The position numbers were made by a program, and so were the translations under genes. Below the pieces are notes generated by a model. That model saw only the letters and a program-made list of their open reading frames with translations. It was not told where the DNA came from and made no database searches. From Macrostomum lignano (taxonomy: Eukaryota), in NCBI GenBank assembly GCA_002269645.1, contig NIVC01000029.1:496001-560000 (forward strand): a stretch of DNA of 64,000 bases, in the 5' to 3' direction. Positions 6,666 through 64,000 of the stretch are shown here, piece after piece; the stretch's first letter is position 1, and every line of letters starts with the position of its first letter.

Positions 6666-6958
6666 CTAGTAACTCCTATATTGTTTTACAGGAAAAACGC
6701 ATTGGCACTACTTGTAGTGCGCATATGAATACACAATTTTATCGGCTGCAGACCACCGGCTCACTGCTCTGTGCATGGTTGGTCACAGCCCAACGCAGCC
6801 AATCGGAAACTTTAGCAGCCAAGACCCCCCCCCCCCAACAAAAGACCCAAAGTATTCCCAAAACCCTGCACAAAAACCTGTCTGCAAACTCTACAAAGCA
6901 ACAGACTTCAGCAGTTTATCTGAATTCGAATAGAGAAAAGAAACAAAGAAGACTAATT

Positions 6959-14705
<7,747 letters not shown>

Positions 14706-32297: not shown

Positions 32298-35200
32298 TTA
32301 CTCACGACTGGGATTCAGAAGCAGGTTGATCTGAAGTTAAAAAAGCAGAAAATAAGAATTTTCGAAAGTAAATACTCTAGACTGGGAGGCTGGCCCAGCA
32401 ACCGAGGATCTGGAGGAGGCTGGCCCAGCAACTGACACTCTGGGAGGCTGGCCCAGCAACTGACACTCTGGGAGGCTGGCCCAGCAACTGGCACTCTGGG
32501 AGGCTGGCCCAGCAACTGGGGATCTGGGAGGCCGGCCCAACAACTGAGGATTTGGGGAAGGCTGGCCCAGCAACTGACACTCTGGGAGGCTGGCCCAGCA
32601 ACTGGGGATCTGGGAGGCTGGCCCAGCAACTGGGGATCTGGGAGGCTGGCCCCGCAACTGACACTCTGGGAGGCTGGCCCAGCAACTGAGGATCTGGGGG
32701 AGGCTGGCCCAGCAACTGGGGATCTGGGAGGCTGGCCCCGCAACTGACACTCTGAGAGGCTGGCCCAGCAACTGAGGATTTGGGGGAGGCTGGCCCAGCA
32801 ACTGAGGATCTGGGGGAGGCTGGCCCAGCAACGGACACTCTGGGAGGCTGGCCCAGCAACTGAGGATCTGGGGGAGGCTGGCCCAGCAACTGACACTCTG
32901 GGAGGCTGGCCCAGCAACTGGGGATCTGGGAGGCTGGCCCCGCAACTGACACTCTGGGAGGCTGGCCCAGCAACTGGGGATCTGGGAGGCTGGCCCCGCA
33001 ACTGACACTCTGGGAGGCTGGCCCAGCAACTGGGGATCTGGGAGGCTGGCCCCGCAACTGACACTCTGGGAGGCCGGCCCAGCAAATGACACTCTGAGAG
33101 GCTGGCCCAGCAACTGAGGATTTGGGGGAGGCTGGCCCAGCAACGGACACTCTGGGAGGCTGGCCCAGCAACTGACATTCTTGGTGGCTGGCCCAGCAAC
33201 TGAGGATCTGAGAGGCTGGCCCAGCAAGAGGATCTCAGATGAACTACATGTACACAAGCTGTAAACACCCTAGTTGGACATCTTATGAGGTGCTATTCAA
33301 CATAATCAGCCCAGCTTACCTGTTCAACCGTAGGACAAGCAATTATCTGCAGTTCCTCTTCCGTATAGTGCTTCTCTAGTATTGACTCGATGCTTTTGAA
33401 GCACTGCAGAGTGTTGGCCTGTCCATGGGAGATAAATGCAACCAGCTGGCTATTATTGGCAAGGTAATATGGCAAACAAACGATAGACAGAGAAATTCTA
33501 AGTGTGCTATCAGGTGCTCACCTCTCTTTTAATACATAAATATATTCTAACTAGCGCAATACTCAGAATAAATCCTCTGTTGAATAAATTACACTTCATA
33601 GAAACCTTGCACTAAAGAAGTCGATTAATAAATATTGGCTTTAAACTACGACGTATCATTAACATACATAAAGTTACATATTCAATATTCTCTAAGAACA
33701 ATGCCTTGGTAATTGAAAGACAAAAAGGACAGAAAAATGATTAATCAGCCTTGGATCAATTGGCAAAACAATCCTAAAATTGGATAAACCTATATTAAAA
33801 TGGGACAAACAAATTTGAAAATTGGACTAACCAATCTAAAAATTGGACAAACCAATCTTAAAATTGGACCAACCTATCCTAAAATTGGACAAACCAATCT
33901 TAAAATTTGACAAACAAATCTGAAAAAATGGGCAAACCAATCTGAAAATTTGACGAACCCATCCTAAAATTGGACAAACCAATCTTAAAATTGGACAAAC
34001 CAATCTTAAAATTGGTCAAACCAATCTTAAAATTGGTCAAACCAATCTTAAAATTGGTCAAACCAATCTTAAAATTGGTCAAACCAATCTTAAAATTGGT
34101 CAAACCAATCTTAAAATTGGTCAAACCAATCTTAAAATTGGTCAAACCAATCTTAAAATTGGTCAAACCAATCTTAAAATTGGTCAAACCAATCTTAAAA
34201 TTGGTCAAACCAATCTTAAAATTGGTCAAACCAATCTTAAAATTGGTCAAACCAATCTTAAAATTGGACAAACCAATCTTCTTAAAATTGGTCAAACCAA
34301 TCTAAAAATCGTACAAATCAGAGGAAGCCTATTTATAAGTGGATTGCTCACCTTAATCGGCCTGAACAGTATATGCTCAGTGTCCTGATTAGCCAGATAC
34401 AATCGCAGACTATTCAATAAGGCAGGCACCTGAGTCTTTAATCTTTTATAAGCCTCAGCCAATAAATCGTGCAATTTCTCCGGCGCAGACCAAGGCTGAT
34501 TGCGTAACAAAGCAACGTTTCCGGCGGACTGTTTGGCACTATTGGAGTTGAGCTCCTCCAAGTTGGAGTACATTTTACAGAACTCCGCAACGCCTTGCGT
34601 TAGGCGCTCGCTAGCAGAGGTGATGAATCTTTGACAGGTTGCTCGGAGCTGGGAGTCCACCTAGCGAGTAGATTGGGACTCACCTGAACTAGTATGCTGT
34701 CTTGTCACTGCGTTATTCAATTATTTTCCCGACTGTCACTCTACTGGAATTTTCACTCTCAGACCTATATAGTCACTCTCAGACCTATATAGTCAATCTC
34801 AGACCTATATAGTCACTCTCAGACCTATATAGTCACTCTCAGACCTATATAGTCAATCTCAGACCTATATAGTCAATCTCAGACCTATATAGTCAATCTC
34901 AGACCTATATAGTCAATCTCAGACCTATATAGTCAATCTCAGACCTATATAGTCAATCTCAGACCTATATAGTCAATCTCAGACCTATGTAAGACCTATA
35001 TCTTCAATTTCGGACCTATATAGTGACTCCCAGAAGTATATAGTGACTCCCAGACCTATATAGCTACTCTCAGATCTATATAATCACTAACAGACCCATA
35101 CAGTCGCTCCCAGACCTACATAGTCCCTCTCAAGACAGTCACTCGCAAAAGCCGCACAAAAGCATATTGCAAGCAACAAAATACAAACCTGCTGTCTGCA

Positions 35201-38200
35201 ATCCAGCGTATTCTCAACTACATCCGGGTGACTATCGAGCAGAAACTGCAGAAAAGCATTGTTCCGATTCAATGCCAACAATCTGCCCCTAGCAGAGAAC
35301 AGATTGACAGCCGCTGAACGCATCTTACTAAAGTCTAAACTGGCCTCTTTAATGATGCCGCCGGCGTCCAATTGAAACGGAGCAACTTGTTCGCGCAGAA
35401 TCAGTAGATGCTTCATCAAAAATAGGTCGCAATCTACAGAAGTTTTACGACCAGCGATTGACTTTGAAGCGGATAGCAGGGACTGGACGCAGAGGTCCAA
35501 CACTTCCTGGGCAAGGCCTTGAAATGTGCCTCTGTCTAGGCACCTGCTTAGCTTAGATAGCAGCGTCAGAGTGCGGCGCACTGTGGGATACCACATGCCG
35601 TGCAGGTCAGCTGGGGACAGCGGCATGTTGGTCGACACCGATGAAGGTGGGTGAGGAGCCGCCAGGCCAGCGTCCGCCAGGGCGCCTCCGGCTGACACCT
35701 GCGAGTGAGACGGAGTACCCACTTTTGTGACAGGCTGCTCAGTAACTGAGGATTTGGGAGGCTGGCTTAGCAACTGAGGATTTGGGAGGCTGGCCCAGCA
35801 ACTGACACTCTGGGAGGCTGGCCCAGCAACTGACACTCTGGAAGGCTGGCCCAGCAACTGACACTCTGGGAAGCTGGCCCAGCAACTGACACTCTGGGAA
35901 GCTGGCCCAGCAACTGAGGATTTGGGAGGCTGGCCCAGCAACTGACACTCTGGGAGGCTGGCCCAGCAACTGAGGATTTGGGAGGCTGGCCCAGCAACTG
36001 ACACTCTGGGAGGCTGGCTCAGCAACTGACACTCTGGGAGGCTGGCCCAGCAACTGAGGATTTGGGAGGCTGGCCCAGCAACTGACACTCTGGGAGGCTG
36101 GCCCAGCAACTAAGGATCTGGGAGGGCGGCAGCTGAGGCAAACGGAAGTATTCCAACAAAAAAACCTGCCCAAACGAGGAAATTCTATTCTTGCAGGAGT
36201 GTCCGAACACGAAGGAAAGCTGCTTGACGTCAAAGCCATATAATTATCAGCCAATTAGTCGAAAAATAACAATTTTTGGGAAAAGATGGGAGCCGGAAAA
36301 ACAGATGCTGCACAATTAAAAAACAAAGGGAGCTTAATATAATAGAAGAGGCGAGAAGGAACATCTAATTAGTGCCTATTAGTGTCTAATGAGAGTTTTT
36401 CTGCTGAAAATGTTTCTTAAAAGGACGCGCACTGCACACAATCATAGGATAGACATGGCTAATTACTTATTGTAAAATTATTGCAAGCAGTAGAGAGTAT
36501 TGTTTTAACAGTAACCCACAGATACTATATAGTATCTGTGCAGGAACCTCATAAAAATCAAAAGATCCACTTTAGAGTGAACTATTCAATCTCTATAAGT
36601 TCATAGAAAAGTACATTCAATCGGTTCAAAAGCTACACAAAAGTACATTCAATCGGTTCAAAAGCTACACAAAAGTACATTCAATCGGTTCAAAAGCTAC
36701 ACAAAAGTACATTCAATCGGTTCAAAAGCTACACAAAAGTACATTCAATCGGTTCAAAAGCTACACAAAAGTACATTCAATCGGTTCAAAAGCTACACAA
36801 AAGTACATTCAATCGGTTCAAAAGCTACACAAAAGTACATTCAATCGGTTCAAAAGCTACACAAAAGTACATTCAATCGGTTCAAAAGCTACACAAAAGT
36901 ACATTCAGTCAATCACAACCCTATGCAAAAGTGCATAGAATCTATTAAATTAATAACTTAAAAGTAGATGAACCCTATCATACTTGAAACCCATGCAAAA
37001 TTAATTGCAGACGGTCAGTATCTCACTCAAAAGTACGTAATCGATTAAACGTACTACAGACAGCTATCAACCCTCCCTAAGCAATCATAATATTTGTCAC
37101 AAACCTACTCTTAAAATACTACTTGAAGATCATTGGTACATAAAAGCTCACCACTCCAATCTTGTATCATCCCTAAAAAATACTCACCTGTCCAGTATTA
37201 AGACTATCAGCGATATTTCTCATCATCTCAAGCTTCTCCGGATAAGCCAAGTCCCCCGGAGCCGGCCGGAAGCCCAGAATCTCGGAATTAGCATAGACGT
37301 GAGTCCGATAGACCAGGCGCTCTTGAACGTCCGCTAAGATGGATCGACAGGCCCAGACAAAAGCAGCACCGGCCTCGGGTTCCGGCGCTGGCGGTATAGT
37401 GTCCGTAGCATCCAGTGAGGCGGTCGATTCTTGGTCTGAAAACAGTCCAAATTAATAATACAGATTAGTGAGATTGAATGCTGCCTATACAAGAATGCAG
37501 GAATTCCCTAGATGGGATTCTCCATAAGAACAGGGCACTAACAACCTTTAATTCCCACATAGAAACTCCAAATGGTTATGGATTTCCATGCTCAAATCCG
37601 CCATAAAAAAGGATTCACCATAGAATACCAAAAAATGGAGATATTCCAAAGAAACAGGATTCTCCATTGAAGCCGGTGTTTCAAATAGACACTGGCATCC
37701 CAAATAAAAACGGGGATTTTTCATAGACACTGGGCATCATTATAGAAACTGAGATTTCCCATAGAAACTAGGATTCCTCATAAAAAATGGGGATTCCCTA
37801 TAGACACTGGGATTCTTAATAGAAACTGGGATTTCCCATAGACACTGGGGTTTCCCATAAAAAGGGATCTCTCAAAGACTCCAGGATTCCAAATAGAAAA
37901 GGGATTTCCCAAAGACACACTAGGATTCTCTTTAGAAACGGGGATTCCCCATAGAAACAGGGATTCTCCATAGAAACAGTGATTCCCCATATAAACAGGG
38001 ATTCTCCATAGGAACAGAGATTCCCCATAGAAACAGGGATTCTCCATAAAAACAGGGATTCTCTATAGAAAAAGGGATTCCCCTTAGAAACAGGAATTCT
38101 CCATAGAAATAGGGATTCTCCATAGTAACAAGGATTCTCCATAGAAACAGGGATTCTCCATAGGAACAGGGATTTTCCATAGAGACTGGGATTCTCCATA

Positions 38201-48580: not shown

Positions 48581-49090
48581 TCAATCATCTGAATAGTTAT
48601 TTGTTCCAGTTGATTCACGATGTCGATTTATCTGCAAGCGGCGCTCTTCCCACTGCAAACTCTGCCGATGCAACAGCTCTCCGAACTCGTGATCGCGCTC
48701 AGCTTTAGACAGAGCCCGAACCGGCACTAGCCACAGCGGATAGGCTACACCGCACAGTTCGCAATGTGCTTTCATGGATCGAAGGAGCCAGTTAGTTAAA
48801 CAGCCGACATGAATGCTGCCAACGCTGCCGCGACAATTGCACAGATTGTGTAGCAGGAGTCCGCGCGTAGAGCTTGACATGCAGATTCGGCAACACTGAT
48901 CGGATGAATTGGCGTTCGATGCTGCCGCGGAAGTGCCGGATATTATTGAGTTAGGCTGATCGTTACTACTAGCACCTACAGGACCTCTAGTGGCAGATCG
49001 ACTCCTGTCTCTGACGACACGTCTGCGACTGTTTTGGCGACTGTTTTCACTACTGTTGGTGCTGCTTGAACTGAAGCTTTGATGGGCCAT
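48581..49090 (-). CDS. RING-CH (RINGv, C4HC3) E3-ligase-like protein, MARCH-related, 169 aa, single exon, no TM helices
   Basis: CRIC...LCNCRGS...IHVGCLTNWL....HCELC matches the RINGv consensus; intact ATG to TGA. Confidence 0.8.
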   Translation of the reverse strand: MAHQSFSSSSTNSSENSRQNSRRRVVRDRSRSATRGPVGASSNDQPNSIISGTSAAASNANSSDQCCRICMSSSTRGLLLHNLCNCRGSVGSIHVGCLTNWLLRSMKAHCELCGVAYPLWLVPVRALSKAERDHEFGELLHRQSLQWEERRLQINRHRESTGTNNYSDD

Positions 49091-51279
49091 TGTTAATAAT
49101 ATATTTCATGCGTTTGCTTTCATCAGTTCAAAGTCTTTAATATCAGTTCAAGCTTGCTTGCAAATTATTGCTTAGGCTATGGAACTATAGCTAGGTACTA
49201 TTCAGTAAGGAACTGTCTATGGTAGTTAATCAAGTTCGTCAAGGTGTGCGGTATTGTAATTATACTTTTACCCAGACGCAATAAGGAAATATTTTGGCCA
49301 TTATTCCACAGTTTTGATGTGTACCATAGACATTTGGATTGAAAAAATCCATCGCTCAGTATTTTTGTTAGTAAATACAGAACAACAAGAAGTAAATGAA
49401 CAAAAAGGAAAAATCATTAAAACTAAAGTACCAACTACACGAAAGAGTTCATAATAAATGTCACAGCTAGTGCAGTTTATCAGTTTGTAGTCGAAATTTG
49501 ACTATGTAAAAATCAATTTGTTACCCAAAGTGAAACATGCAGTACTCAAAGCCGCAGTTTCCAAAGATGCTCGACACTTTAGCCTGATAATTTGGCACTG
49601 CAAAAGGAGTTGGTCTATGTTGAATGTTTTCTATGGAAGAAAAATACAGGTGCTCAAGTATAGTTCCCGAACTTACCATTTGAAAGATGCACGTCTTGGT
49701 TAAGTTGGCTTGCGACTCATGAGCTTCGTCTGATGAGCTTCTTTGGTACCGCAGTATCCAAGCTGGGATTCTATGGGACTGTCGGCTGCTCGACTGAATC
49801 GATTGGCCATTTGAGGCATCGCTTAAAGCCGTCGAGGCGTTGAAGACTGCATGGTCGCGTTTTCTTCCTAGGTAGCGCCGCACGGTTCGCTCAGTCGTCG
49901 ACAGGAAGATTTTTTTCAATTAATAAGCGCTGCTGTTTGACGAGAGATGCACCAGCCATTAGTTGTTTGACAAGATAAATAGCTTTTTCTCGCATTACTC
50001 GCTTTCCTGATTTCTTGCAAGACGCAAGCAAAATCAGCACTCATCAGTGTTGTCTATGGTCAAACTAAGCCACACAGCTCAGTCGTCTATGGGTAAAACA
50101 GCTCTTAAAACAGCTAATTGAAGCATGATAAAAAGTGTGGAATAATGACAGCGACAAAAGTGTGGAATAATGGCCGCAAAAGTGTGGAATAATGACTGAG
50201 CGCTGAGTGAAAGTATAAATACAATGCACTTGTATAGTATGCAACTTCGTTGAATAATGGCCATAGACACTCGTGCGCTACGCGCACTCGAGTTCTGGCC
50301 ATTATTCAACTCAGTTGCATACTATACAATCTACCATTAGCTATAGTTCGTAGTCAACTGATTTTTGGGAACAATTTTGCTCAAATGAATACCTCTTAAT
50401 ATCAAAAATATGAAGTAAAAAATTGAAATTGTGTTAACAATAGAACGCCCGCGCCAAGTTACAAGTCTAAATCGCTGCCGTGACAACGAAAAATGAATGA
50501 ATGAAGAAAAGCCAAGTGGTGTGGATTCATTTCCTTATGTACTGCAGTTAACCTTCGTCCCCAGCCCCCTCAGCAGCCCGAAGGTGCCAAGCCTTCGCCA
50601 TGGAGGCCGCAGCCTTCGAACACGCAGGAGTTCTGCTTGCTTTGCTCAGCTTCCATATTTCCATTCTTCACAACCTCTATATTTAAGTAAAGTTCAGTAC
50701 CAATCTTCGAATACACAGATTCACCACCAAAGCTTTAGAATTTTCGTTCTGTTCGTTTCTATCTGAGACAGTGACTATAGTCAAGGAAGAAAATGAATTT
50801 TAATCCACCAAAGATTAGGAGCTCGAGACAATATTTATTTATCTTAATATATATTATGAAGATAATATATTTATTTGGAAGAGGCATAAAACGACAAGCG
50901 CACAGACAAATGCTTGTGAATTGGTCTTCATTGCGGTCGCAAAATCTTCATTGCCCAAAATTTCTCCTCATGGCAATGACCCATGGCAATGGCCGGCCAT
51001 TGCCTAGAATTCCAATTTCAATGCAACCAATTAATTCAAGCCAGTTTTTATCCAGCATCTTGCAAAGCATATCTTGCATCAGTCAATTCAAAACGTTTAT
51101 TTTAAGATGTAAATAATTAAACTGGCACAGAAATTTTTGTTGGTGATGAACATCACACTGGTCGAGCAAAGTACTAAAAGTCATTAAATAAAAAATATTA
51201 AACTAGACTGTCGTTCTTATTCTTTCAGTAATTCTACGAGTACAATTTGCTGATTCCTGTAGAAGTAAAGATTGCATGC

Positions 51280-52250
51280 CTAATTAAAGGAACATCCGTG
51301 AAAGGTGCAATTGTTGAAGGCAAACTTCGTACCAACAGAATGGGCAGCTTCAGTGCTAACACTAGCCTCCGTCGATACTGCAGTCTCACCGACGATCTCA
51401 ACAGCATCAGCATTTTCGGGTGACCCAGCTTCTTGCTCTAGATCATGACGATTCAATGCCACCTGAACAGACTCACTCGTCTTTTGAAGCGACCGGTCGC
51501 GACGCTTGGCTAGGTACCTCCTAGTCGTTCGCTCGCTCAGCTGTCCAGTAATGCTCATTATATCGCTCATGCTGTGCCCTGCCGCCTCGAGATCGCATAT
51601 TCGCGTGACCCTGTTTTAGAGTGCAAATTTATATAGTTGGATTCATGAGTAATTGGTAACATAACATGTATCATAACATAATTAAAGTTACTATTATTAA
51701 TTTATCAGTCTTACCGAATGCAATGATTCGTGTAGGTCTTCGCAAGTCCCGCCTTCGTACTCAAGTTTCTCATGAAGCCACTCAGATAATTCTCTCCACG
51801 GTTCTGCTTCGAGGAGAAAACAGGGCCTCCATCGTTGCGGCTGGCCAAAGGATGAGGAAACAGATTGTTGTCCTTCGTTGTAACTGGAAGCAGCTTGAGG
51901 TATTTCTCCACCTTTTCCACGTCGTAAATTCTGGCCTGCTTGTTGTCGGGCTGCTTCTTGGCCTTCTCTGGATCTGCTGACTTATTTTTCGAGGGCAACG
52001 GAGGCAGACAGTAGTTACGGCTTTCCATCAGAGTCGACGTGCAATTGAAGTGAGCTTCTATCCTTCAAGAATTTGAGGTGCTCCTGGCCTCGCTCGCCAA
52101 AGCTGTATATGATGTAGAATAAGAATTTGTCCTGCTCAACTTCAGCTGTGGTGCCTTGGAAGTAGATCATCAGCTTCCTCATGCCCCCCTCCTCGATTGG
52201 CTCACTGCTGCGTCCTCCCACCACTCTGGTGAAAGTCTCGAACCTTCACA
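51280..52250 (-). mobile_element. Crypton-type tyrosine recombinase (DUF3504-like) gene, 5'-truncated, one frameshift, one 104-nt intron (51611-51714)
   Basis: EPIEEGGMRKLMIYF, FYIIYSFGERGQEHL (catalytic R), spliced YTNHCIR|VTRICDLEAAG (HxxR), IMSITGQLSERTTRRY (catalytic Y; H replaced by Q) and C-terminal FNNCTF. Donor CG|GTAAGA, acceptor AAACAG|G. Confidence 0.85.
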
Positions 52251-52256
52251 CGCAGC

Positions 52257-52448
52257 ATGCTATTTGCAGAAGAAAAGTCTTCTCTATTGATGATGTCAGC
52301 ACCAGATTTCGGCAGCACCGTGGAGATTGGAGTTGTCAGCCGCAATGCCAGTCACAACCGCGTGTTCCAGGGCTACATGAGATGCTTTGGCGTGTCTGAG
52401 AGAGCTCTGAGCGATGCCGAAGTCGAGTTTTTGTATGGACTGTGCTGA
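52257..52448 (+). other. Possible terminal exon of a LamG/pentraxin-like (concanavalin A fold) domain
   Basis: VEIG...FQGYMRCFGVSERALSDAEVEFLYGLC* resembles the F.G.M..F....RALS..EV..LY terminus; no upstream exons found. Confidence 0.4.
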
Positions 52449-52922
52449 GAGAACTAACAGGACTATTTTATAGGAATAAGAGCTACATTTAGATGTAGTT
52501 TTCATTGGTTTTTTCAGTTGCTACTCAAGACCTAAGTAGAAGGACGCGTCACTCGTGTTTCCTGGACATTTTTAAAGACCTGTTTGCAACAAAAATACAC
52601 AAGAGCGAGATAGACCATTCCGATTTGCTTGTTCTGGAAAGGCATTCCACGAGTTTATGATTGCTTATTCTTTTGGCTCTTCTTTGGTAACTTTACGGAT
52701 TCTCTTTGCTAAATAGTTTTGGAATGATTAGATGCTGATGTAAGTAGTATATGCTACGAAGTCTGCCCCTTTGACAGAAGTGAGGTTTAGGACAACAGAC
52801 ATGGGCACGGTGAAATGTCCAGAGGACAGAATTAGACGGCCTTTGGACCTGTCTATGGACCTGTCTATCCATTAGTTAGGTCGATAAAGAGCCCTGCCCT
52901 AGGCATGTGTTGACCAAAATGT

Positions 52923-53688
52923 TCACACTAGAGGCCACCTCGACCAGCAAATTGGACACGAAATCAGGCCTTGAATGGCGTGACTGCACCCACCGGAGCA
53001 GCCGACTCCGCCGAAGCAGCCGTCGCCAGCGCTGCCGTCGCCGCCTCGCTCGCCATCGTTGGAGCTCCATCTGGCGCTAACAGCTTCACCCCAGCCAGCC
53101 GGCGCCGTAGCCTTCGTGACTGCGTTGGAAGGTGTTCGGCTGGGATCGTTTAACCCTGGCTGTCCGTTGAAACAAGCAGACTTTGCACCAGCCGAACTGC
53201 TGCCGTTAGGCCCAGCCTGACCCGGCTGACCTGGAAATGTTTTCAAAGAAGTTCTGAAATGATTGCATAAAGATACCCACAGTAGAATCCCAGTCGCCAA
53301 TATCTGACTGACCCCTCCCACTGAGACTGGCTGTAACATAATGCGAGGCTCCACCACCGCCTCCAGCGGCCAGCAGCAGCGGGCCACTGTTCGTGATGTA
53401 CACGAAGCTGCCGCCGCCCCCACTGCCGCTGCATTTGCTACCGGAGCCGCTGCCACCCGACTGTCCCACAGCGACTGCAACAGCCGCGTGCCGCCCGTCA
53501 GGCTAAAGCTGCCAGCGATGGAGGCGCCCCTGCCGCCAGTCGTGTTCCTGAAGCCGTGTGCCTCTTCCCGCCGCTCCCGAGGCCTCCATTCGGTAGCAGC
53601 CGGTCGCAGGCACCTGCCGATGCTGGAGTCTGCAACGAGTCGGAGCTGCTTGTAGTCTGTGCTCAGCTGAGCTCGTCAAGCAACCAAC
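52923..53688 (-). pseudogene. Glycine-rich ALK/LTK-like domain gene, frameshifted; probable 46-nt intron 53231-53276
   Basis: Switching frames gives QVPATGCYRMEASGAAG / TGGRGASIAGSFSLTGGT / VAVGQSGG..GSGGGGSFV..PLLLAAGGGGG / GAGWLG / FGG..C, the ALK/LTK glycine-rich domain pattern. At least 3 frameshifts are needed. Confidence 0.65.
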
Positions 53689-53699
53689 CTTGAACTAAA

Positions 53700-53835
53700 G
53701 GACACGAGTGACATTTAGTTCAAGATCACTTGGGTCACGAGTGACATTTGGATCAAGATCACTTGGGTCACGAATGGTCATTGGGTCAATATGACTTGGG
53801 TCACGAGTAGTCATTGGGTCAAGGTCACTTGGGTA
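53700..53835. repeat. Short 33-bp tandem repeat (CACGAGTGACATTTAGTTCAAGATCACTTGGGT)
   Basis: Period of 33 (53703 to 53736), about 4 degenerate units. Confidence 0.8.
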
Positions 53836-54177
53836 ACATATGGAAAAATATGTGGGGTTTCATTAGCTCATGCCTGCAATCATTGAGTGTACTAGCCGTA
53901 CCTGAATTGAAAATCTGTATCTGTCTCCACATCGTGACGCACTGAAAGCTCTGTTGTATATTATAATAGCTGACAGGTAAAAGACTGAGACAGTCGCAGC
54001 CAATTATCGCTGCGGGACTAATTTACTTCTCATCCATTATTCTCATCTTCTATAGATATCAAACTCTACTTTGGGGGCTATTGAAGCTGCATTTCTCAGA
54101 GAGCATTAGTAGGTAACAGTGGGTATAAGGCTAGATAAATAAAGGCGGTTACATCTTTAATACTATTATTACTATAG

Positions 54178-54426
54178 CCAGTCTGAGCAGGGCAATGATG
54201 GATCTTGGCCTAGCCTCCGAGGCGGTTGGAGACCAAATTCTGCTTCACCGACAGGCCTTCTACAATTCTGGCTATTCCACCTGCTTCAAGTGCGGCAGCC
54301 AGGACCTGCAGGTGACAGCCAATGCGACCGGAATCTCTGCTGCTGGGCACGGCGAGGAGAGCGGCTTTGACGTCTTCACCTGCAATAACTGTCCTTGGGT
54401 GACCAGCTTCAGGTGGAGCAGCTCGT
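54178..54426 (+). CDS. Candidate internal exon encoding a zinc-ribbon-like CxxC-x30-CxxC peptide; gene unidentified
   Basis: Acceptor ACTATAG| at 54177, donor |GTGAGT at 54427, open frame containing CFKCGS...FTCNNCPW; GC-rich compared with its flanks. Confidence 0.45.
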
Positions 54427-54434
54427 GTGAGTCT

Positions 54435-54825
<391 letters not shown>

Positions 54826-56275
54826 TACTGTCTGTGTGTTTACGTGGACTTTTTGGAAGTTCAGTAGCCTCGTTAGCTGGACCACCCGGTGTAGGTAGAC
54901 CACTTAGGTGGACCACCAAATAATTTTGTCTCTGGTGGGGTTAAGACGTTGATGAGGATCTCAAATTAATGTCAGGCGGGTCAAGAAGGGCTCTAGCAAT
55001 TTTGGAATGTCTAGCATGGTTTTTTCCAAAGTTATTCGCATTTCAGTTTAGCTGGACCTCCAGCCTGGTCTACCTAAACCGAGCGAGTCTGGTCCACGTA
55101 AACCGAAAAATTTCAGAAAATGTTTCGAAAATCGTCTGTTTGTGTCTGTTTGTGTCTGTTTGTGTCTGTTTGTGTATAGCAGTTATTAAGCATAGATTCG
55201 ATGCAAAACTGAATTTTTTTACATATCATTACCTTACGAACAAATGGCTATGTTAACATCATATTATGACCGCCACTGGCCTTAAAACAATATGCGTTAA
55301 AATTCTTTGACATTCAAGTAGGTACGCAGGTTAATTTAAAATTCTGACAACCTCGTATGCGAAATGAATTTTATATAGTAAACTTTAAACTCCATTTAAT
55401 TAGCTCAGTTCCAGCAATTCCGGTATCGTACTCTGAGCAGAGACTCACAGAGTAAGACACCAATGTAAAGAAATCCAATTTACTAACCAGATCAAGCGAT
55501 AAAGACTCCGAGACAAGAAAGATATTTAAGTGAAGCTTAAACAATATTCTTCAATGACTTCTCAAGAACTCCCAGTGGTCCTTGATAGCCACACTGTGTA
55601 AATGAAAATTTCTGAGGCTCTACCATTACACAAGAAAAAATTAATAGCAACTTCATAAATTAAGTGCTTGCCAACTCTATCGCAAACACTATGGGATATC
55701 TTGAAGAAGAAGATCCTAAGCTGCAGCCTTTTAAGTGCAAAGTTGAAGATGCAATTTACCTAATTGAAAAGGGCCATTCATACATGTACATGCAAAATCA
55801 AGAGGACGCAATTAAGAAGGGCCTTTTAGCTAGAAATTGGGTCTCTGAATCTCTAGCAAAAGATCGACTTGATTGCGGTCCCAGTAAAACTAAGAACGCA
55901 TTAACAGTCGGCCTAACACTAACTGTCTGTTTGGTCCACGTAAACACATTTGCAGGAGTATAGGGTTGGAACAGACAGACAGACAGACCTCCCTTTCTAT
56001 AATTGGCTGGTTAACACTTAGGAGGATAGATCCACCCCAACGATGGGACCGACCTCAGCCAATAGGAAACCCGCAAGGGTTCTGAAGGTAAGACTGTAGA
56101 GAGAGGGATATATAATGTCTAAGCGGGTGGTCCCCGTAAACCATGGCGTAGTTAGACCACACACAGACAGTTTTATAAATTAGAACTGATTCTATTCACA
56201 CTTATTAGGTCTAACATTATTTTCCATACTCTAAGTTTCATCTATAGATAAATTTATTGTGCCAAGCAAGATATA

Positions 56276-56434
56276 ATGACCCGAAAAAAAAACAAAAAGG
56301 ACGCCAAGCCTAAGCCTAAGGTAAAACCTAAAAAAACTGCGACGCAAAAAGCCACTGCAAAATCGAAGAAGGCCGCATCGCCTGGTGAAAACCGACAGTC
56401 TGCTCGCAAAACCATCGACACCGAGTCCAGAAAA
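56276..56434 (+). CDS. Lys-rich start exon (53 aa, MTRKKNKKDAKPKPKVKPKK...AASPGENRQSARKTIDTESRK), putative exon 1 of the modular DBF4 gene
   Basis: ATG at 56276, open frame, phase-0 donor |GTGAGT; its 3' end is homologous to the repeated exons. Confidence 0.7.
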
Positions 56435-56837
56435 GTGAGTTTCGTTTGATGATCTCAAAATAGCTAATTGCAAGGCCTATCTAACCTACAGACACAACTG
56501 AAGCAGCTCTCTCAGTCTGTTTGGGGCTTTGGCTCACAGAGCTGTCTTGAAAGTTTAGTGCAGGAATGCTTACGTTTCTTGGAATGCAATCAGAACAGAT
56601 TCTTAGAAAGCGAGCTGGTCCACCATGAGATCAGAATGTCTGCACTGTGTAAATGAATGGTCTCTAGGCATTCCGACTCAGATTATCGCCTAGTAGTGCT
56701 GTAGAGAAGGTGGTCCACCTAACCTACAGACACAACTGAAGCAGCTCTCTCAGTCTGAGGGTCACACGGATACACTGCAGCGGTTTTGAATTTAAGCTTC
56801 CGACTTTGACTTGTCTTTTTATTCTCTAACTTCCTAG

Positions 56838-59800
56838 GAGCCTGAGGTCGAATTTCGTTCTCCTGAGCTCGACCAGTCTGACGCTTCGAAAAAGTTGAAA
56901 TCGCGCTCTACGTCTGCATCACGCCTTGATGAAGGCGCTCAGTCGCACAACGCTACCGCGGATGCAGGCGCTACTCCAGCCTCGAAGAAGGCCGCATCGC
57001 CAGGTGAAAATCGTCGGTCTACTGGCAAATCCGTCGACACCGAGTCCAGAAAAGTGAGTTTCGCTTGATGATCTCAAAGTAGCTAGCTGCAACTCAATTG
57101 CTGTAGAGAAGCTGGTCCACCTAACCTACAGACACAACTGAAGCAGCTCTCTCAGTCTGTTTGGGGCTTTGAATCTTGGAAGGTGGTCCACCTAACCTAC
57201 AGACACATCTGAAGCAGCTTTCTCAGTCTGTTTGGGGCTTTGACTCTTATAAGGTGGTCCACCTAACCTACAGACACAACTGAAGCAGCTTTCTCAGTCT
57301 GTTTGGGGCCTTGGCTCTCAGAGCTGTCTTGAAAGTTTAGTGCGGGAATGTTTCCGTTTCTTGGAATGCAATCAGAACAGATTCTTAGAAAGCGAGCTGG
57401 TCCACCATGAGATCAGAATGTCTGCACTGTGTAAATGAATGGTCTCTAGGCATTCCGACTCAGATTATCGCCTAGTAGTGCTGTAGAGAAGGTGGTCCAC
57501 CTAACCTACAAACACAACTGGAGCAGCTCTCTCAGTCTGTTTGAGGGTCACACGTAGGGATGTCGACCCCGGGGAGTGCTCCCCGGGGCCCCGGGGAGCT
57601 TGTCGGGGAATATTCCCCGGGGAATTGAACCGGGGACCCCGGGGAGAAAAATGCATTTTTAACCTAATTTTTGCCATTAAAATAAGAAAATAATTCACAG
57701 AGAGCTGATTGAAACTCTGTCTATGCTTTTCTTACCGCATAACTGCTTATCTCAATGTAAAATTTCAAACGCAACACACGTTTGAATGTTTTTTCACTAC
57801 GAGTCCTTCAATCAAGCAAATTTCACCTAAAAACCCGTCAGGAAAAAGAAGCTTTACTGACTACTGTGTTGGTCTGCGTTGACGGCTTGACGGAATTTGA
57901 CGCAGGCACAGCGCTGCGTCCTGCGGACGCATGGGGGTGTCATACAATAACAAAATGCTCCCTATTAGACAAGGACAATGTCTGCTAGAAATAAAAATTT
58001 TGATTATAAAAACAGTCTCATTCATTAATTATCCTCCCACGAGCGTAGCTGCTGAGCATGCATTTTCCGCCTCCACACCACAGTCTGGACTCCTTCTGAC
58101 AAAGGTGCACGCACGATTTGATGATGCCACGTTGTCAAATACAGTTTTAAATAAACACAAGCTCCCCGGGGTCGACATCCCTACTACAACCAAGGGATAT
58201 AGGCATTTCTTAGGAGCCATTTAAATTTTAAAGTGATCTTATGCGAATTTTAATGTTAAAAGCTTCATGCTGTAACTAACTAATTTAGTAGGATTGCATT
58301 GTAATCAGTTATTCATTAATTTTTCGCTATTTTTACAAACCATCCCACGTTGTCTTGACTCTTGATTTGCCATCTACTGTTATAACTGAGCCTGAAGACT
58401 TGTCTATACAGAGGACAGTGTTTTGAATCTCTGGCTAAACTGTCTCTCCTCTCTGCGCCTCTCCACTCGCGGGTACAGAGAAGGCTATTAAAAAGTTATT
58501 CCAAAACACTGTACATTCGCTATGTACATTAAGCCCAATCGCCTGACCCTTCGTCTGGGGGGTCTGGGCTGGTGGAATGAGTGAGCGGCACAAACAACAG
58601 AAAAAGCAGACAAACTTCACATGCTTACAGTTTCTGTCCTGATTGAGATACAGAGTTGAGACTTTACATTTAGATAGAGAATGAGTCAATAAAGAATTGC
58701 GTCAAATTTGAAGTCAATCGCTTCACGTGGAGCAAGCTTATGACAGCCGAAAGTTAGTCATTTTAAACCTATTTACACTCCTTTGCCCAGATCGGGAAAG
58801 AGAGGCAGGCGGGCGGAGGTTGGGGTGGTTGCCTCGCTGAAAAAACAGTTAATTTTAAAGTGCACAGCGCCTTTCAGGATTAACTTTGAGACTTGAAATT
58901 TTACACGGTTGAAAGGATCGGTAGAAGTGGAGCGGCGCTATGGAGGATTTAGTAAAAAATCGCGCATTTTGAGCAGTTTTTGCACTTTTAGGTAGGAAGA
59001 CTTGAGTTTAGGAAATTTTAAGGTAGCCTAAGACATTCTCCGTAGTAAATTTAGGGCGGGTGCAAAAGTTATCGTAATTTGGTTGAGCGGTTTGGGACTT
59101 GGGAGTCCATAGCAAAGTAATTTGTACACAGACACACACGCAGACAGAGTTTTCATTTTTATAGGTAGAGATTGTTTAGTTTTTACCCTTGCGCCTTGAA
59201 CATGTAGTCTAAAGCTAAAATCAAAGTTTAAAATGCCATTTAAGATCTAAGCCAAAGTTATTCGCCGTTTTTAACTTATTTTTAATTTTCCCCGGGGTCC
59301 CCGGGAATGACAGTAAATTCCCCGGGTCCCCGATAAGAATATTCCCCGGGGAATCGACATCCCTAGTCACACGGATACACGGCAGCGGTTTTGAATTTAA
59401 GCTTCCGACGTTGACTTGTCTTTTTATTCTCTAACATCCTAGGAGCCTGAGTTCGAATTTCATTCTCCTGAGCTCGACCAGTCTGACGCTTCGAAAAAGT
59501 CGAAATCGCGCTCTGCGTCTGCATCACGCCTTGATGAAGGCTCTCAGTTGCACAACGCTACCGCGGATGCAGGCGCTACTCCAGCCTCGAAGAAGGCCGC
59601 ATCGCCTGGTGAAAATCGTCGGTCTACTCGCAAATACGTCGACACCGAGTCCAGAAAAGTGAGTTTCGCTTGATGATCTCAAAGTAGCTAGCTGCAACTC
59701 AATTGCTGTAGAGAAGCTCTTAAAAGGTGGTCCACCTAACCTACAGACACAACTGAAGCAGCTCTCTCAGTCTGTTTGGGGCTTTGACTCTTATAAGGTG

Positions 59801-61524
59801 GTCCACCTAACCTACAGACACAACTGAAGCAGCTTTCTCAGTCTGTTTGGGGCTTTGACTCTTGGAAGGTGGTCCACCTAACCTACAGACACAACTGAAG
59901 CAGCTCTCTCAGTCTGTTTGGGGCTTTGACTTTTATAAGGTGGTCCACCTAACCTACAGACACAACTGATGCAGCTCTCTCAGTCTGTTTGGGGCCTTGG
60001 CTGTCAGAGCTGTCTTGAAAGTTTAGTGCGGGAATGTTTCCGTTTCTTGGAATGCAATCAGAACAGATTCTTAGAAAGCGAGCTGGTCCACCATGAGATC
60101 AGAATGTCTGCACTGTGTAAATGAATGGTCTCTAGGCATTCCGACTCAGATTATCGCCTAGTAGTGCTGTAGAGAAGGTGGTCCACCTAACCTACAGACA
60201 CAACTGAAGCAGCTCTCTCAGTCTGTTTGAGGGTCACACGGATACACTGCAGCGGTTTTGAATTTAAGCTTCCGACGTTGACTTGTCTTTTTATTCTCTA
60301 ACTTCCTAGGAGCCCGAGGTCGAATTTCGTTCTCCTGAGCTCGACCAGTCTGAGGCTTCGAAAAAGTTGAAATCGCGCTCTGCGTCTGCATCACGCCTTG
60401 ATGAAGGCGCTCAGTCGCACAACGCTACCGCGGATGCAGGCGCTACTCCAGCCTCGAAGAAGGCCGCATCGCCTGGTGAAAATCGTCGGTCTACTGGCAA
60501 ATCCGTCGACACCGAGTCCAGAAAAGTGAGTTTCGCTTGATGATCTCAAAGTAGCTAGCTGCAACTCAATTGCTGTAGAGAAGCTGGTCCACCTAACCTA
60601 CAGACACAACTGAAGCAGCTCTCTCAGTCTGTTTGGGGCTTTGAATCTTGGAAGGTGGTCCACCTAACCTACAGACACATCTGAAGCAGCTTTCTCAGTC
60701 TGTTTGGGGCTTTGACTCTTGGAAGGTGGTCCACCTAACCTACAGACACAACTGAAGCAGCTCTCTCAGTCTGTTTGGGGCTTTGACTTTTATAAGGTGG
60801 TCCACCTAACCTACAGACACAACTGAAGCAGCTCTCTCAGTCTGTTTGGGGCTTTGACTTTTATAAGGTGGTCCACCTAACCTACAGACACAACTGAAGC
60901 AGCTCTCTCAGTCTGTTTGGGGCTTTGACTCTTAAAAAGTGGTCCACCTAACCTACAGACACAACTGAAGCAGCTCTCTCAGTCTGTTTGGGGCCTTGGC
61001 TCTCAGAGCTGTCTTGAAAGTTTAGTGCGGGAATGTTTCCGTTTCTTGGAATGCAATCAGAACAGATTCTTAGAAAGCGAGCTGGTCCACCATGAGATCA
61101 GAATGTCTGCACTGTGTAAATGAATGGTCTCTAGGCATTCCGACTCAGATTATCGCCTAGTAGTGCTGTAGAGAAGGTGGTCCACCTAACCTACAGACAC
61201 AACTGAAGCAGCTCTCTCAGTCTGTTTGAGGGTCACACGGATACACTGCAGCGGTTTTGAATTTAAGCTTCCGACGTTGACTTGTCTTTTTATTCTCTAA
61301 CTTACTAGGAGCCCGAGGTCGAATTTCGTTCTCCTGAGCTCGACCAGTCTGAGGCTTCGAAAAAGTTGAAATCGCGCTCTGCGTCTGCATCACGCCTTGA
61401 TGAAGGCGCTCAGTCGCACAACGCTACCGCGGATGCAAGCGCTACTCCAGCCTCGAAGAAGGCCGCATCGCCTGGTGAAAATCGTCGGTCTACTGGCAAA
61501 TCCGTCGACACCGAGTCCAGAAAA
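56838..61524 (+). CDS. Four tandem 216-nt (72-aa) phase-0 exons: 56838-57053, 59443-59658, 60310-60525, 61309-61524
   Basis: Each has acceptor TTTTTATTCTCTAAC..CTAG|GAG and donor AGAAAA|GTGAGT, and is stop-free (EPEVEFRSPELDQSDASKK...KKAASPGENRRST.K.VDTESRK). Confidence 0.75.
57555..59365. mobile_element. Non-autonomous hAT transposon derivative, 1811 bp, TAGGGATGTCGA TIRs, 8-bp TSD GTCACACG
   Basis: TSD at 57547-57554 and 59366-59373; CCCCGGGG subterminal repeats; remnant PPTSVAAEHAFS of the hAT dimerisation domain; the empty site GAGGGTCACACGGATAC is present in the paralogous introns. Confidence 0.92.
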
Positions 61525-62034
61525 GTGAGTTTCGCTTGATGATCTCAAAGTAGCTAGCTGCAACTCAATTGCTGTAGAGAAGCTGGTCCACCTAACCTAC
61601 AGACACAACTGAAGCAGCTCTCTCAGTCTGTTTGGGGCTTTGAATCTTGGAAGGTGGTCCACCTAACCTACAGACACATCTGAAGCAGCTTTCTCAGTCT
61701 GTTTGGGGCTTTGACTCTTGGAAGGTGGTCCACCTAACCTACAGATACAACTGAAGCAGCTCTCTCAGTCTGTTTGGGGCTTTGACTTTTATAAGGTGGT
61801 CCACCTAACCTACAGACACAACTGAAGCAGCTCTCTCAGTCTGTTTGGGGCTTTGACTCTTATAAGGTGTCCACCTAACCTACAGACACAACTGAAGCAG
61901 CTCTCTCAGTCTGTTTGGGGCTTTGACTCTTAGAAGGTGGTCCACCTAACCTACAGTCAAAACTTATGTACTGTTTAGGCGTTTCCGTAATGGAGTAATA
62001 TGTGAGAAATTTTTTTTTATTTTAGTTTCTACAG

Positions 62035-63062
62035 GGCTGTTTGGTCGAGCAGTTTACATTGGATTCTCTTCGAGGGAAGCGAGTTTTTTTTCTGTACGGC
62101 GAAAGTCAAAAGCGACAAAAGAAGCTGGAATCTGCCGTCGTCTATTATGGCGGAAGCGTTGCTTCGTTTTTTTCAAATGAGGTGTGTAGTTTTTGCAATG
62201 CATTCGTTGTTTTTGTTTGTTGCTTGTTAATAGGGCAGATTAGAGACGTTGATAGATTTTTTGTAGCTATGGGCTCGTATTTTTTGCTTTTCCAGGTTGA
62301 TTTAATCATCGCTGACGATTCCGCTGTCTCCATTGAAGCTAAACAATCTTTTTCGGAGTTTTCTAGGGGTTTCACCATGCAGCAGAGAGCCGTTACGCAA
62401 ACTTCGAGTTCGCAATGCAGAATTGTCAAAACATTCGAAGATATTTTGACGAAAGCTCGCTTGCTGCAAATACCTGTCTACACTCCGGCAATATTTCGAG
62501 ATCGAATTCGCGATCAAGTTTCTCAACACGAGCTGTGCCAGAAAACTATTTCTTCAGGGAGGTTTGCCGAAGAAGATCGGAATTTGACCCCACCGGCCGT
62601 TGTTGTTACGGATGCCCAGCATTTGCTGAGACCAATCTTCAAAGATAACATTGATGTCGTCGACATTTTTGCAAACCCAAGGGCTAATAATAACGATGAA
62701 AAAAATCGTCAAAAGCCTGACGGCAAAGAAAAACGGAAAGGTCGGTGTGAAAACTGTCGCGAAGCCTACGACGACTTTAATCAGCACATAACATTAAGCC
62801 AAAAGCACCAAGATTTCGTTTCGAATAAAAAAATTTTACTGAAATCGACCAAATCATTTCAACTCTTCCGACGCTAGACAGCGCCCTAAATGAAGCGACT
62901 CAAAAGGCTACCGCTCCTATGACACATCATGACACGAAAAAACCGGATTCGAAAGCACTACCTAACATATTTCAGCAAAATGACGGTGATAGACGCCAAG
63001 CCGCATCGCTTGGCGAAAATCGTCAGTCTGCTCGCAAATACGTCGACACCGAGTCCAAAAAA
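62035..63062 (+). CDS. DBF4: DBF4/ASK (CDC7 kinase activator) core; exons 62035-62181 and 62296-63062; apparent 1-nt deletion in the A-run near 62827-62833
   Basis: Motif N (LRGKRVFFL..LESAVVYYGGSVASFFSNE|VDLII; ILTKARLLQIPV), motif M (LTPPAVVVTDAQHLLRPIFK) and motif C zinc finger (GRCENCREAYDDFNQHI..SQKH.DF). Confidence 0.88.
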
Positions 63063-63408
63063 GTGAGTTTCGTTTAATGATCTCAAAATAGCTAGCTGCA
63101 TGCAACTCAATTGCTGTAGAGAAGTTCTTAAAAGGTGGTCCACCTAAACTACAGACACAACTGAAGCAGCTCTCTCAGTCTGTTTGGGGCTTTGACTTTT
63201 ATAAGGTGGTCCACCTAACCTACAGAAACAACTGAAGCAGCTTTCTCAGTCTGTTTGGGGCTTTGACTCTTAAAAGGTGGTCCACCTAACCTACAGACAC
63301 AACTGAAGCAGCTCTCTCAGTCTGTTTGAGGGTCACACGGATACACGGCAGCGGTTTTGAATTTAAGCTTCCGACTTTGACTTGTCTTTTTATTCTCTAA
63401 TTTCCTAG

Positions 63409-63633
63409 GAGCCTGAGGTCGAATTTCGTTCCCGCCAAATCGAACGCACTGGTGCCTCAAAAAGAGGGCGGAAATCGCGAAGCCGTTCGCGCTCTGCATC
63501 ACGCCTTGATGAAGGCGCTCAGTCGCACAACGCTACCGCGGATGCAGGCGCTACTCCAGCCTCGAAGAAGGCCGCATCGCCTGGTGAAAATCGTCGGTCT
63601 ACTCGCAAATACGTCGACACCGAGTCCAGAAAA
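63409..63633 (+). CDS. Fifth module exon (225 nt, 75 aa, phase 0) downstream of the DBF4 core; the gene continues beyond the window
   Basis: Same acceptor and donor as the other modules; open frame EPEVEFRSRQIERTGASKRGRKSRSRSRSASRL...DTESRK. Confidence 0.7.
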
Positions 63634-64000
63634 GTGAGTTTCGCTTGATGATCTCAAAGTAGCTAGCTGCAACTCAATTGCTGTAGAGAAGCTGGTCCAC
63701 CTAACCTACAGAACAGACGCAACTGAAGCAGCTCTCTCAGTCTGTTTGGGGCTTTGACTCTTGGAAGGTGGTCCACCTAACCTACAGACACAACTGAAGC
63801 AGCTCTCTCAGTCTGTTTGGGGCTTTAACTCTTAAAAGGTGGTCAACCTAACCTACAGACACAACTGAAGCAGCTTTCTCAGTCTGTTTGGGGCTTTGAC
63901 TTTTATAAGGTGGTCCACCTAACCTACAGACACAACTGAAGCAGCTCTCTCAGTCTGTTTGGGGCTTTGACTCTTAAAAGGTGGTCCACCTAACCTACAG

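Follow-up and report, generated by a model that had tools for sequence, protein, structure and literature searches.

How the protein encoded by a DBF4 gene begins, and how much of a repeated exon array enters it, is the question raised by a locus of the flatworm Macrostomum lignano (assembly Mlig_3_7, GCA_002269645.1; contig NIVC01000029.1:496001-560000). This whole 64-kb stretch is called the window, and positions are counted within it. The DBF4/Dfp1/ASK family forms the regulatory subunit of the CDC7 kinase (DBF4-dependent kinase, DDK). At this locus the conserved DBF4 core is flanked by copies of a symmetric exon, four upstream (M1 to M4) behind an ATG exon (exon 1) and one downstream (D1). 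An earlier note, made from the sequence alone, had joined all of them in one regulator with a tunable number of modules on both sides. The reading preferred here, to which we give a probability of about 0.5, is that of a DBF4 paralogue with a satellite-driven exon array, whose start codon would be the AUG of the spliced leader (SL) joined at 62035, whose downstream module would belong to a C-terminal tail, and whose frameshift would stem from the assembly.

The core encodes a divergent DBF4 paralogue

The core, previously taken for a single exon, consists of two exons on the plus strand that are separated by a 114-nt intron (62182-62295). Core exon A (62035-62181, 147 nt) encodes a putative BRCT-like motif N, while core exon B (62296-63062, 767 nt) encodes motif M, motif C (the Cys-Cys-His-His (CCHH) zinc finger of the zf-DBF type) and, from about position 63000, a module-type tail. 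The length of the intron is a multiple of three and it is free of stops in frame; its retention would add 38 residues and leave the open reading frame (ORF) intact.

The DBF4 identity claimed before was confirmed with the frame-corrected core (see below). The Pfam profile zf-DBF (PF07535) was matched over positions 1-45 of its 45 positions with 59.1 bits (E 4e-16; cut-off 24.8), and C201, C204, H214 and H221 of motif C are invariant in the alignment with homologues. Motif M (LTPPAVVVTDAQHLLRPIF) aligns with LKPPFIKVED.S..YRP of the homologues, with P150, D156 and P163 invariant. Over motif N, homologues align along GKRVFFL...GG.V..FFS..VD.II; the Pfam BRCT score of 20.1 bits lies just below the cut-off of 21.3, and weak profile matches were obtained with the Rad4 BRCT domain and the HBRCT domain of yeast Dbf4 (3OQ4; E 0.0014 and 0.0074). 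A profile built from the alignment matched the human DBF4 M-C construct 4F99_B of the CDC7-DBF4 crystal structure (E 4.9e-26) and also yeast Dbf4 (7PT6).

An exhaustive HMMER search returned distant relatives only, the best non-self match being the M. lignano paralogue BOX15_Mlig017237 (hereafter Mlig017237; E 6e-14). Identity of the core to the aligned homologues is 20-32%, with 32% to the second M. lignano paralogue. By these sequence comparisons the locus is predicted to encode a fast-evolving, lineage-specific and divergent DBF4 paralogue of M. lignano. A literature search combining Macrostomum with DBF4 found no paper, and DBF4 is not mentioned in the supplements of two expression papers on M. 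lignano.

Gene models carry the core into the downstream module

Two M. lignano entries of UniProt, A0A1I8HXN8 (DBF4-type domain-containing protein, 380 aa) and A0A1I8JFC0 (302 aa), are 100% identical to the conceptual product of the locus; a third model of the gene, A0A1I8FWK5, was retrieved by cluster look-up. All three start exactly at GCLVEQ (62035) without a Met, include D1 and contain no upstream module. D1 (63409-63633, plus strand, 225 nt, phase 0/0) is an RS-rich variant of the module. In A0A1I8HXN8 and A0A1I8FWK5 the core ORF runs on into this exon, in support of the earlier proposal that it continues into a downstream module. According to these models, the downstream array would extend the ORF into a Ser/Lys/Arg-rich and probably disordered C-terminal tail.

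The third entry differs in its structure. A0A1I8JFC0 uses a 231-nt GT..AG 'intron' (62745-62975) which deletes both the zinc finger and a premature TAG; beyond it, the tail and D1 are translated in the +1 frame, a frame that is open in D1 and in M2. The entry probably reflects an artefact of annotation, with a frameshifted copy as its basis. Its stop-skipping intron suggests that ab initio prediction contributed to the UniProt models.

Exon 1 and M-type modules occur in no protein of UniProt or NCBI, nor in libraries of 5.8 billion and 1.84 billion sequences, and the transcript-based annotation of NIVC01000029.1 by NCBI holds no gene over window positions 49091-59090, an interval that covers exon 1 and M1. 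Together with the start of all models at 62035, these results speak against modules on the N-terminal side, as had been proposed.

Anatomy of the exon array

The Lys-rich ATG exon, the four near-identical exons and the further module exon described in the earlier note were all located, each with a GTGAGT donor. Exon 1 (56276-56434, plus strand, 159 nt, 53 codons) has an in-frame TAA 27 nt upstream. It is followed on the same strand by four 216-nt exons of phase 0/0, namely M1 (56838-57053), M2 (59443-59658), M3 (60310-60525) and M4 (61309-61524), all of the form AG|...|GTGAGT and open in frame 0. Pairwise differences among them range from 1 to 9 of 216 positions. The most divergent copy is M2, with eight amino acid changes relative to M1 and M3 and nine relative to M4. 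D1 departs from the M-type locally, in a patch where the in-frame change amounts to +9 nt. Throughout the array, junctions are of phase 0 and consist of GTGAGT donors and AG acceptors behind pyrimidine tracts. The claim that all exons are stop-free and of phase 0/0 thus holds for exon 1, M1-M4 and D1; it fails for the core, which as assembled meets a TAG at 62875-62877. As every module exon is symmetric, being of phase 0 and a multiple of three in length, a change in copy number or the skipping of an exon would keep the frame.

Module introns had been described as copies of one sequence containing a variable 71-bp satellite. The periods of 867 and 999 bp and the variable satellite arrays were found as stated. 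The M1 intron departs from the pattern, as it harbours a transposon of 1811 bp; the M1-M2 period is 2605 bp, or 786 bp after subtraction of the element and its target-site duplication. Arrays of the 71-bp unit lie at 57107-57313 (2.9 copies), 59717-59999 (4.0 copies), 60579-61007 (6.0 copies), 61578-61964 (5.5 copies), 63126-63328 (2.9 copies) and 63689-64000 (at least 4.3 copies, reaching the window end). The intron of M4 is truncated: its satellite array ends inside a unit and directly abuts, at 61964/61965, a unique pre-core sequence of 70 bp (61965-62034, plus strand) with a T-rich tract and the acceptor CTACAG (62029-62034). Module or satellite sequence was found nowhere else in the 64-kb window. 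The conserved intron block gave no Rfam match at either the gathering threshold or E<=1, and its folding z-score is -0.02; a noncoding RNA in this block was therefore rejected.

A common tail of about 63-72 nt (...AASPGENRxSxxKxVDTESRK) ends exon 1, core exon B and every module exon, and the same donor-proximal intron sequence follows it in all of them. The repeating unit is therefore the tail, the intron and the head of the next exon. The copy of this tail in exon 1 has diverged and takes up the final ~72 nt (from 56363). A separate match of 15/17 nt links the start of exon 1 (56273-56289, ATAATGACCCGAAAAAA) to core exon B (62926-62942), about 60 nt before the tail. The idea that exon 1 derives from the 3' end of core exon B, as an old copy truncated at its 5' side and with a fortuitous ATG, was rejected as unproven: one global scoring scheme gave p ~0.004, semi-global alignment gave z = 0.9, overall homology did not reach significance, and the diagnostic sites in tail and intron yield a three-way star.

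The module peptides are hydrophilic and rich in Ser, Thr, Lys and Arg. Their description as low-complexity, basic peptides with S/T-P sites was correct as to these sites, of which there are two to three per module (three in each M-type) and one in exon 1. With respect to charge it applies to exon 1 and D1, which are strongly basic (isoelectric point (pI) 11); M-type modules are near neutral and weakly basic (pI 8.4). No Pfam domain was found for the unit, and no homologue of the modules among the 5.8 billion or 1.84 billion proteins searched.

Selection and origin of the array

Comparison of coding changes among the modules was one of the checks named in the earlier note. Among M1-M4 there are 12 variable sites, ten nonsynonymous and two synonymous (162 nonsynonymous and 54 synonymous sites), which corresponds to a ratio of nonsynonymous to synonymous rates (dN/dS) of about 1 or higher. 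Divergence is 0.5-4.2% in the module exons and 0.6-2.9% in the non-satellite intron block, at least as high in the exons as in the introns. No sign of purifying selection on the module exons emerged from this comparison, whose power is low because the copies are young, and functional constraint on the modules found no support. Since the open frames of M1-M4 were inherited from a young duplication, they are not independent evidence of coding.

The copies at the edges (exon 1 and core exon B) have diverged by about 8-13% from the internal copies, which are 0.5-4% apart from each other, as is usual in arrays that undergo homogenisation. The anatomy points to tandem amplification, by unequal recombination, of a unit made of the 3' tail of a coding exon, the intron and the head of the next exon. 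Recombination would have taken place between introns bearing the 71-bp satellite, with duplication breakpoints inside exons, and the symmetry of the exon (phase 0, 216 or 225 nt) would let each copy keep the reading frame. Tandem duplication of symmetric exons is a known class of event with an ordinary mechanism, although it is unusual for a DBF4 gene. The arrays look like a near-neutral expansion in copy number and not like a tuned device.

Source of the start codon

That the core lacks an ATG of its own, as noted before, was borne out. It opens with a GGC codon, and no ATG in it could serve as a start: Met is first encoded in frame at residue 77, past motif N. With an in-frame TAG (62023) 12 nt 5' of the core acceptor, the start codon must come from elsewhere. 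Short DBF4 homologues begin 1 to 5 residues ahead of the first BRCT strand; an N-terminal extension is therefore not needed.

The SL of M. lignano, CGGTCTCTTACTGCGAAGACTCAATTTATTGCATG, ends in ...TTGCATG (PMC8629364; PMC5173321), and its acceptor motif is [T/C]TNCAG (PMC8629364). In this species 85% of neoblast-specific genes undergo trans-splicing, and conserved genes make up about 70% of those that are trans-spliced (PMC8629364). The 3' AUG of flatworm SLs is a documented initiator according to Cheng et al. 2006, as cited in PMC12582326. The core acceptor CTACAG fits the motif, and the exon behind it is of phase 0, so that the AUG of the SL would be joined in frame. Trans-splicing of the SL AUG to 62035, which the earlier note had itself named as contrary to its model, is thus compatible with the sequence.

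From these sequence features, an SL-supplied start is predicted to be a more likely source of the N-terminus than the upstream array, because the models start at 62035, no protein contains upstream modules and the homologues need no extension. It is further favoured by the paralogue Mlig017237 (NIVC01000723.1, L001 9986-10180), which is likewise annotated as 5' partial, without a start codon. Its coding sequence begins 9 nt 3' of, and in frame with, a TTGCAG acceptor. Its first intron occupies the same position (FFSxx|V) as the core intron in the window and also holds a short tandem repeat. The product of trans-splicing would read M-GCLVEQ..., and exon 1 and the four upstream modules would then lie outside the main protein.

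Several observations weigh against an SL-supplied start. The UniProt models may be partly ab initio, and their identical ends could be contig breaks in repeats instead of transcript ends. The whole DBF4 locus is absent from the transcript-based NCBI annotation, and its expression may therefore be low. A strong cis donor is present at 61525, 510 nt upstream of the core, and if array and core are co-transcribed this donor should favour cis-splicing. Neither AATAAA nor ATTAAA occurs between 61525 and 62034 to end a separate upstream transcript, and a separate upstream gene ending before the core was rejected on this ground. Some evidence for exon 1 as a genuine first exon comes from its ATG, which follows an in-frame stop, and from its ORF, which shares the frame of the array. 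Finally, the SL-core and the M4-core junction are both predictions.

These observations bear most directly on the model of the earlier note, in which a single cis-spliced mRNA comprises exon 1, M1-M4, the core and D1 onward, and disordered phospho-acceptor modules on both sides vary in number by exon skipping or copy-number change. Besides the ATG of exon 1 behind its stop and the missing poly(A) signal between array and core, the model is favoured by the uniform phase-0 junctions with their GTGAGT donors and pyrimidine-tract acceptors, and by the three S/T-P sites of each M-type module. The donor at 61525 also counts for it, given that an upstream cis donor normally turns trans- into cis-splicing (Conrad et al., as cited in PMC8629364). 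Yet D1 occurs in three gene models and exon 1 or an M-type module in none, the openness of M1-M4 is explained by their recent duplication, conservation of the exons does not exceed that of the introns and dN/dS is about 1 or higher, and DBF4 homologues do without an N-terminal extension. As a full account of the locus, this model is a tentative possibility.

The two modes of splicing need not exclude each other. The core acceptor could equally take cis-splicing from 61525, in frame, and about two thirds of the acceptors used by the SL in parasitic flatworms show cis-splicing as well (PMC12582326). Since cis and trans acceptors are often shared in flatworms, both products may coexist, and joining of exon 1-M4 to 62035 by cis-splicing would be a possible minor or alternative isoform beside the preferred SL-started one.

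Reading frame of the core

Core exons A and B sum to 914 nt, and the frame entered at 62035 runs into the TAG at 62875-62877 in the sequence as assembled. The phase-0 end at 63062 is reached only with one extra base in an A7T4 run (A-run 62827-62833). This run has 11 nt in the window, compared with 12 nt implied by two UniProt models, A8T4 (NKKNFT) in A0A1I8HXN8 and A6T6 (NKKFFT) in A0A1I8FWK5. The frameshift site lies inside motif C, ahead of the invariant Asp of NY.EID, and as assembled the motif lacks its 12 final residues. Because this Asp is encoded 3' of the site, the corrected frame is the biological one. Once the frame is corrected, no stop is met in the ORF for about 140 codons 3' of the zinc finger, and this speaks for genuine coding of the tail and D1.

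The assembly was made with Canu from PacBio reads and polished with Pilon (PMC5730564). The missing base is probably a homopolymer consensus error of this assembly and not a real lesion, as A0A1I8HXN8 is otherwise 100% identical to the translation of the window.

Were the lesion real, the locus would be a decaying gene copy, poorly transcribed or silent and carrying neutral repeats, with the DBF4 function left to Mlig017237. Such decay would agree with the frameshift and premature TAG inside motif C, with an entry (A0A1I8JFC0) that looks built on a frameshifted copy, with the inserted transposon and the unconstrained modules, and with the fact that the locus is missing from the transcript-based NCBI annotation while Mlig017237 is annotated in several copies. 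We consider it unlikely, since a 380-aa UniProt protein matches the window translation completely save for one homopolymer base, all invariant residues of motifs N, M and C are kept, indels in homopolymers are the typical residual consensus error of PacBio data in duplicated regions, and the ORF is open far past the zinc finger.

That the arrays themselves were over-expanded or wrongly joined from repeat-containing long reads is highly improbable: ~1-kb repeats of 95-99% identity with satellites, in a redundant polyploid genome sequenced with noisy reads and with at least one probable consensus error, would invite such an artefact, but the copies can be told apart by 12 variable sites in their exons, by four satellite copy numbers, by the transposon that one of them carries within a perfect target-site duplication and by the variant D1, and independent ML2-based models share the core-D1 junction. 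The point differences, unequal satellite counts and presence of the transposon in one copy therefore argue against a simple assembly duplication.

Transposon and genomic surroundings

The element in the M1 intron (57555-59365, 1811 bp) is a composite element with terminal inverted repeats (TIRs). Its outer 12-bp TIRs are TAGGGATGTCGA, a third, inverted TIR copy is found at 58172-58183, and the element is flanked by a perfect 8-bp target-site duplication, GTCACACG, at 57547-57554 and 59366-59373. The 8-bp duplication and the TAG... TIR would fit a hAT transposon; as no transposase domain or remnant was detected in the element by Pfam, it is left as hAT-like, unconfirmed.

Elsewhere in the window, a single-exon ORF encodes a rhodopsin-type G-protein-coupled receptor (6725-8527, plus strand). 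COG3 (~35087-36109) and a single-exon RINGv (MARCH-like) gene (48581-49090) are located on the minus strand, and the latter is annotated verbatim on NIVC01000029.1 by NCBI. No plus-strand gene lies within 7 kb 5' of exon 1, so that DBF4 has no evident operon partner, and no SL RNA gene is present within the 64-kb window. A (GTCT)n microsatellite of about 102 copies (54431-54839) is located 1.4 kb 5' of the locus, and a low-complexity block at ~12-14.5 kb (12000-14500) shows a strong skew in G and A (GC skew 0.77). Tandem repeats are abundant in the M. lignano genome (PMC5730564).

Significance and comparison with known systems

The locus is probably a case of recent, near-neutral tandem exon duplication with modest biological significance. 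The proposal of tunable phospho- or DNA-binding modules amounts to speculation at the level of motifs, given that neither selective constraint on the modules nor homologues of them beyond this locus were found. A role of the array in modulating DDK in flatworm stem or germ cells, be it in stability, localisation or chromatin binding, is a very doubtful reading for this locus. Translation of the modules, if it takes place, would make this the first DBF4 with a copy-number-variable exon array as regulatory tail. It would then also offer a natural example of how a satellite can drive the growth of a disordered region in an essential cell-cycle regulator, in a stem-cell model amenable to transgenesis. 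The locus, being compact, further lends itself to tests of how cis- and trans-splicing compete for a single acceptor. Finally, it indicates that the annotation of M. lignano is incomplete: the NCBI gene set lacks this DBF4 paralogue, whose start codon is not annotated and whose sequence probably contains a homopolymer error.

In common with other members of the DBF4/Dfp1/ASK family, the predicted protein has a putative motif N, a proline-containing motif M and a CCHH motif C in canonical order. It differs in being very divergent, in lacking a genomic start codon, and in a C-terminal tail that derives from tandemly duplicated exons and has no homologue elsewhere. We know of no described DBF4 with a repeated-exon architecture.

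The proposed start resembles SL-AUG trans-splicing in other flatworm genes, in that the first conserved exon lacks an ATG, follows [T/C]TNCAG in phase 0 and would read AUG-GGC-UGU..., and the same pattern is seen in Mlig017237. Unlike a pure outron, the sequence upstream of the core offers potential cis donors, and the junction is a predicted one.

Tandem exon-intron arrays with symmetric exons are known from the kringle IV-2 repeats of LPA, the Olduvai domains of NBPF, the SRCR domains of DMBT1 and the long homologous repeats (LHR) of CR1. The array described here shares with them a head-to-tail unit of exon plus intron in a single phase, so that the frame is kept when the copy number changes, and homogenisation and unequal crossing-over as the presumed drivers. 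In contrast to these systems, its exon encodes an orphan low-complexity peptide and not a folded domain, inclusion in mRNA is indicated for one copy only (D1), its introns are built on a 71-bp satellite, and the arrays flank a conserved core on both sides.

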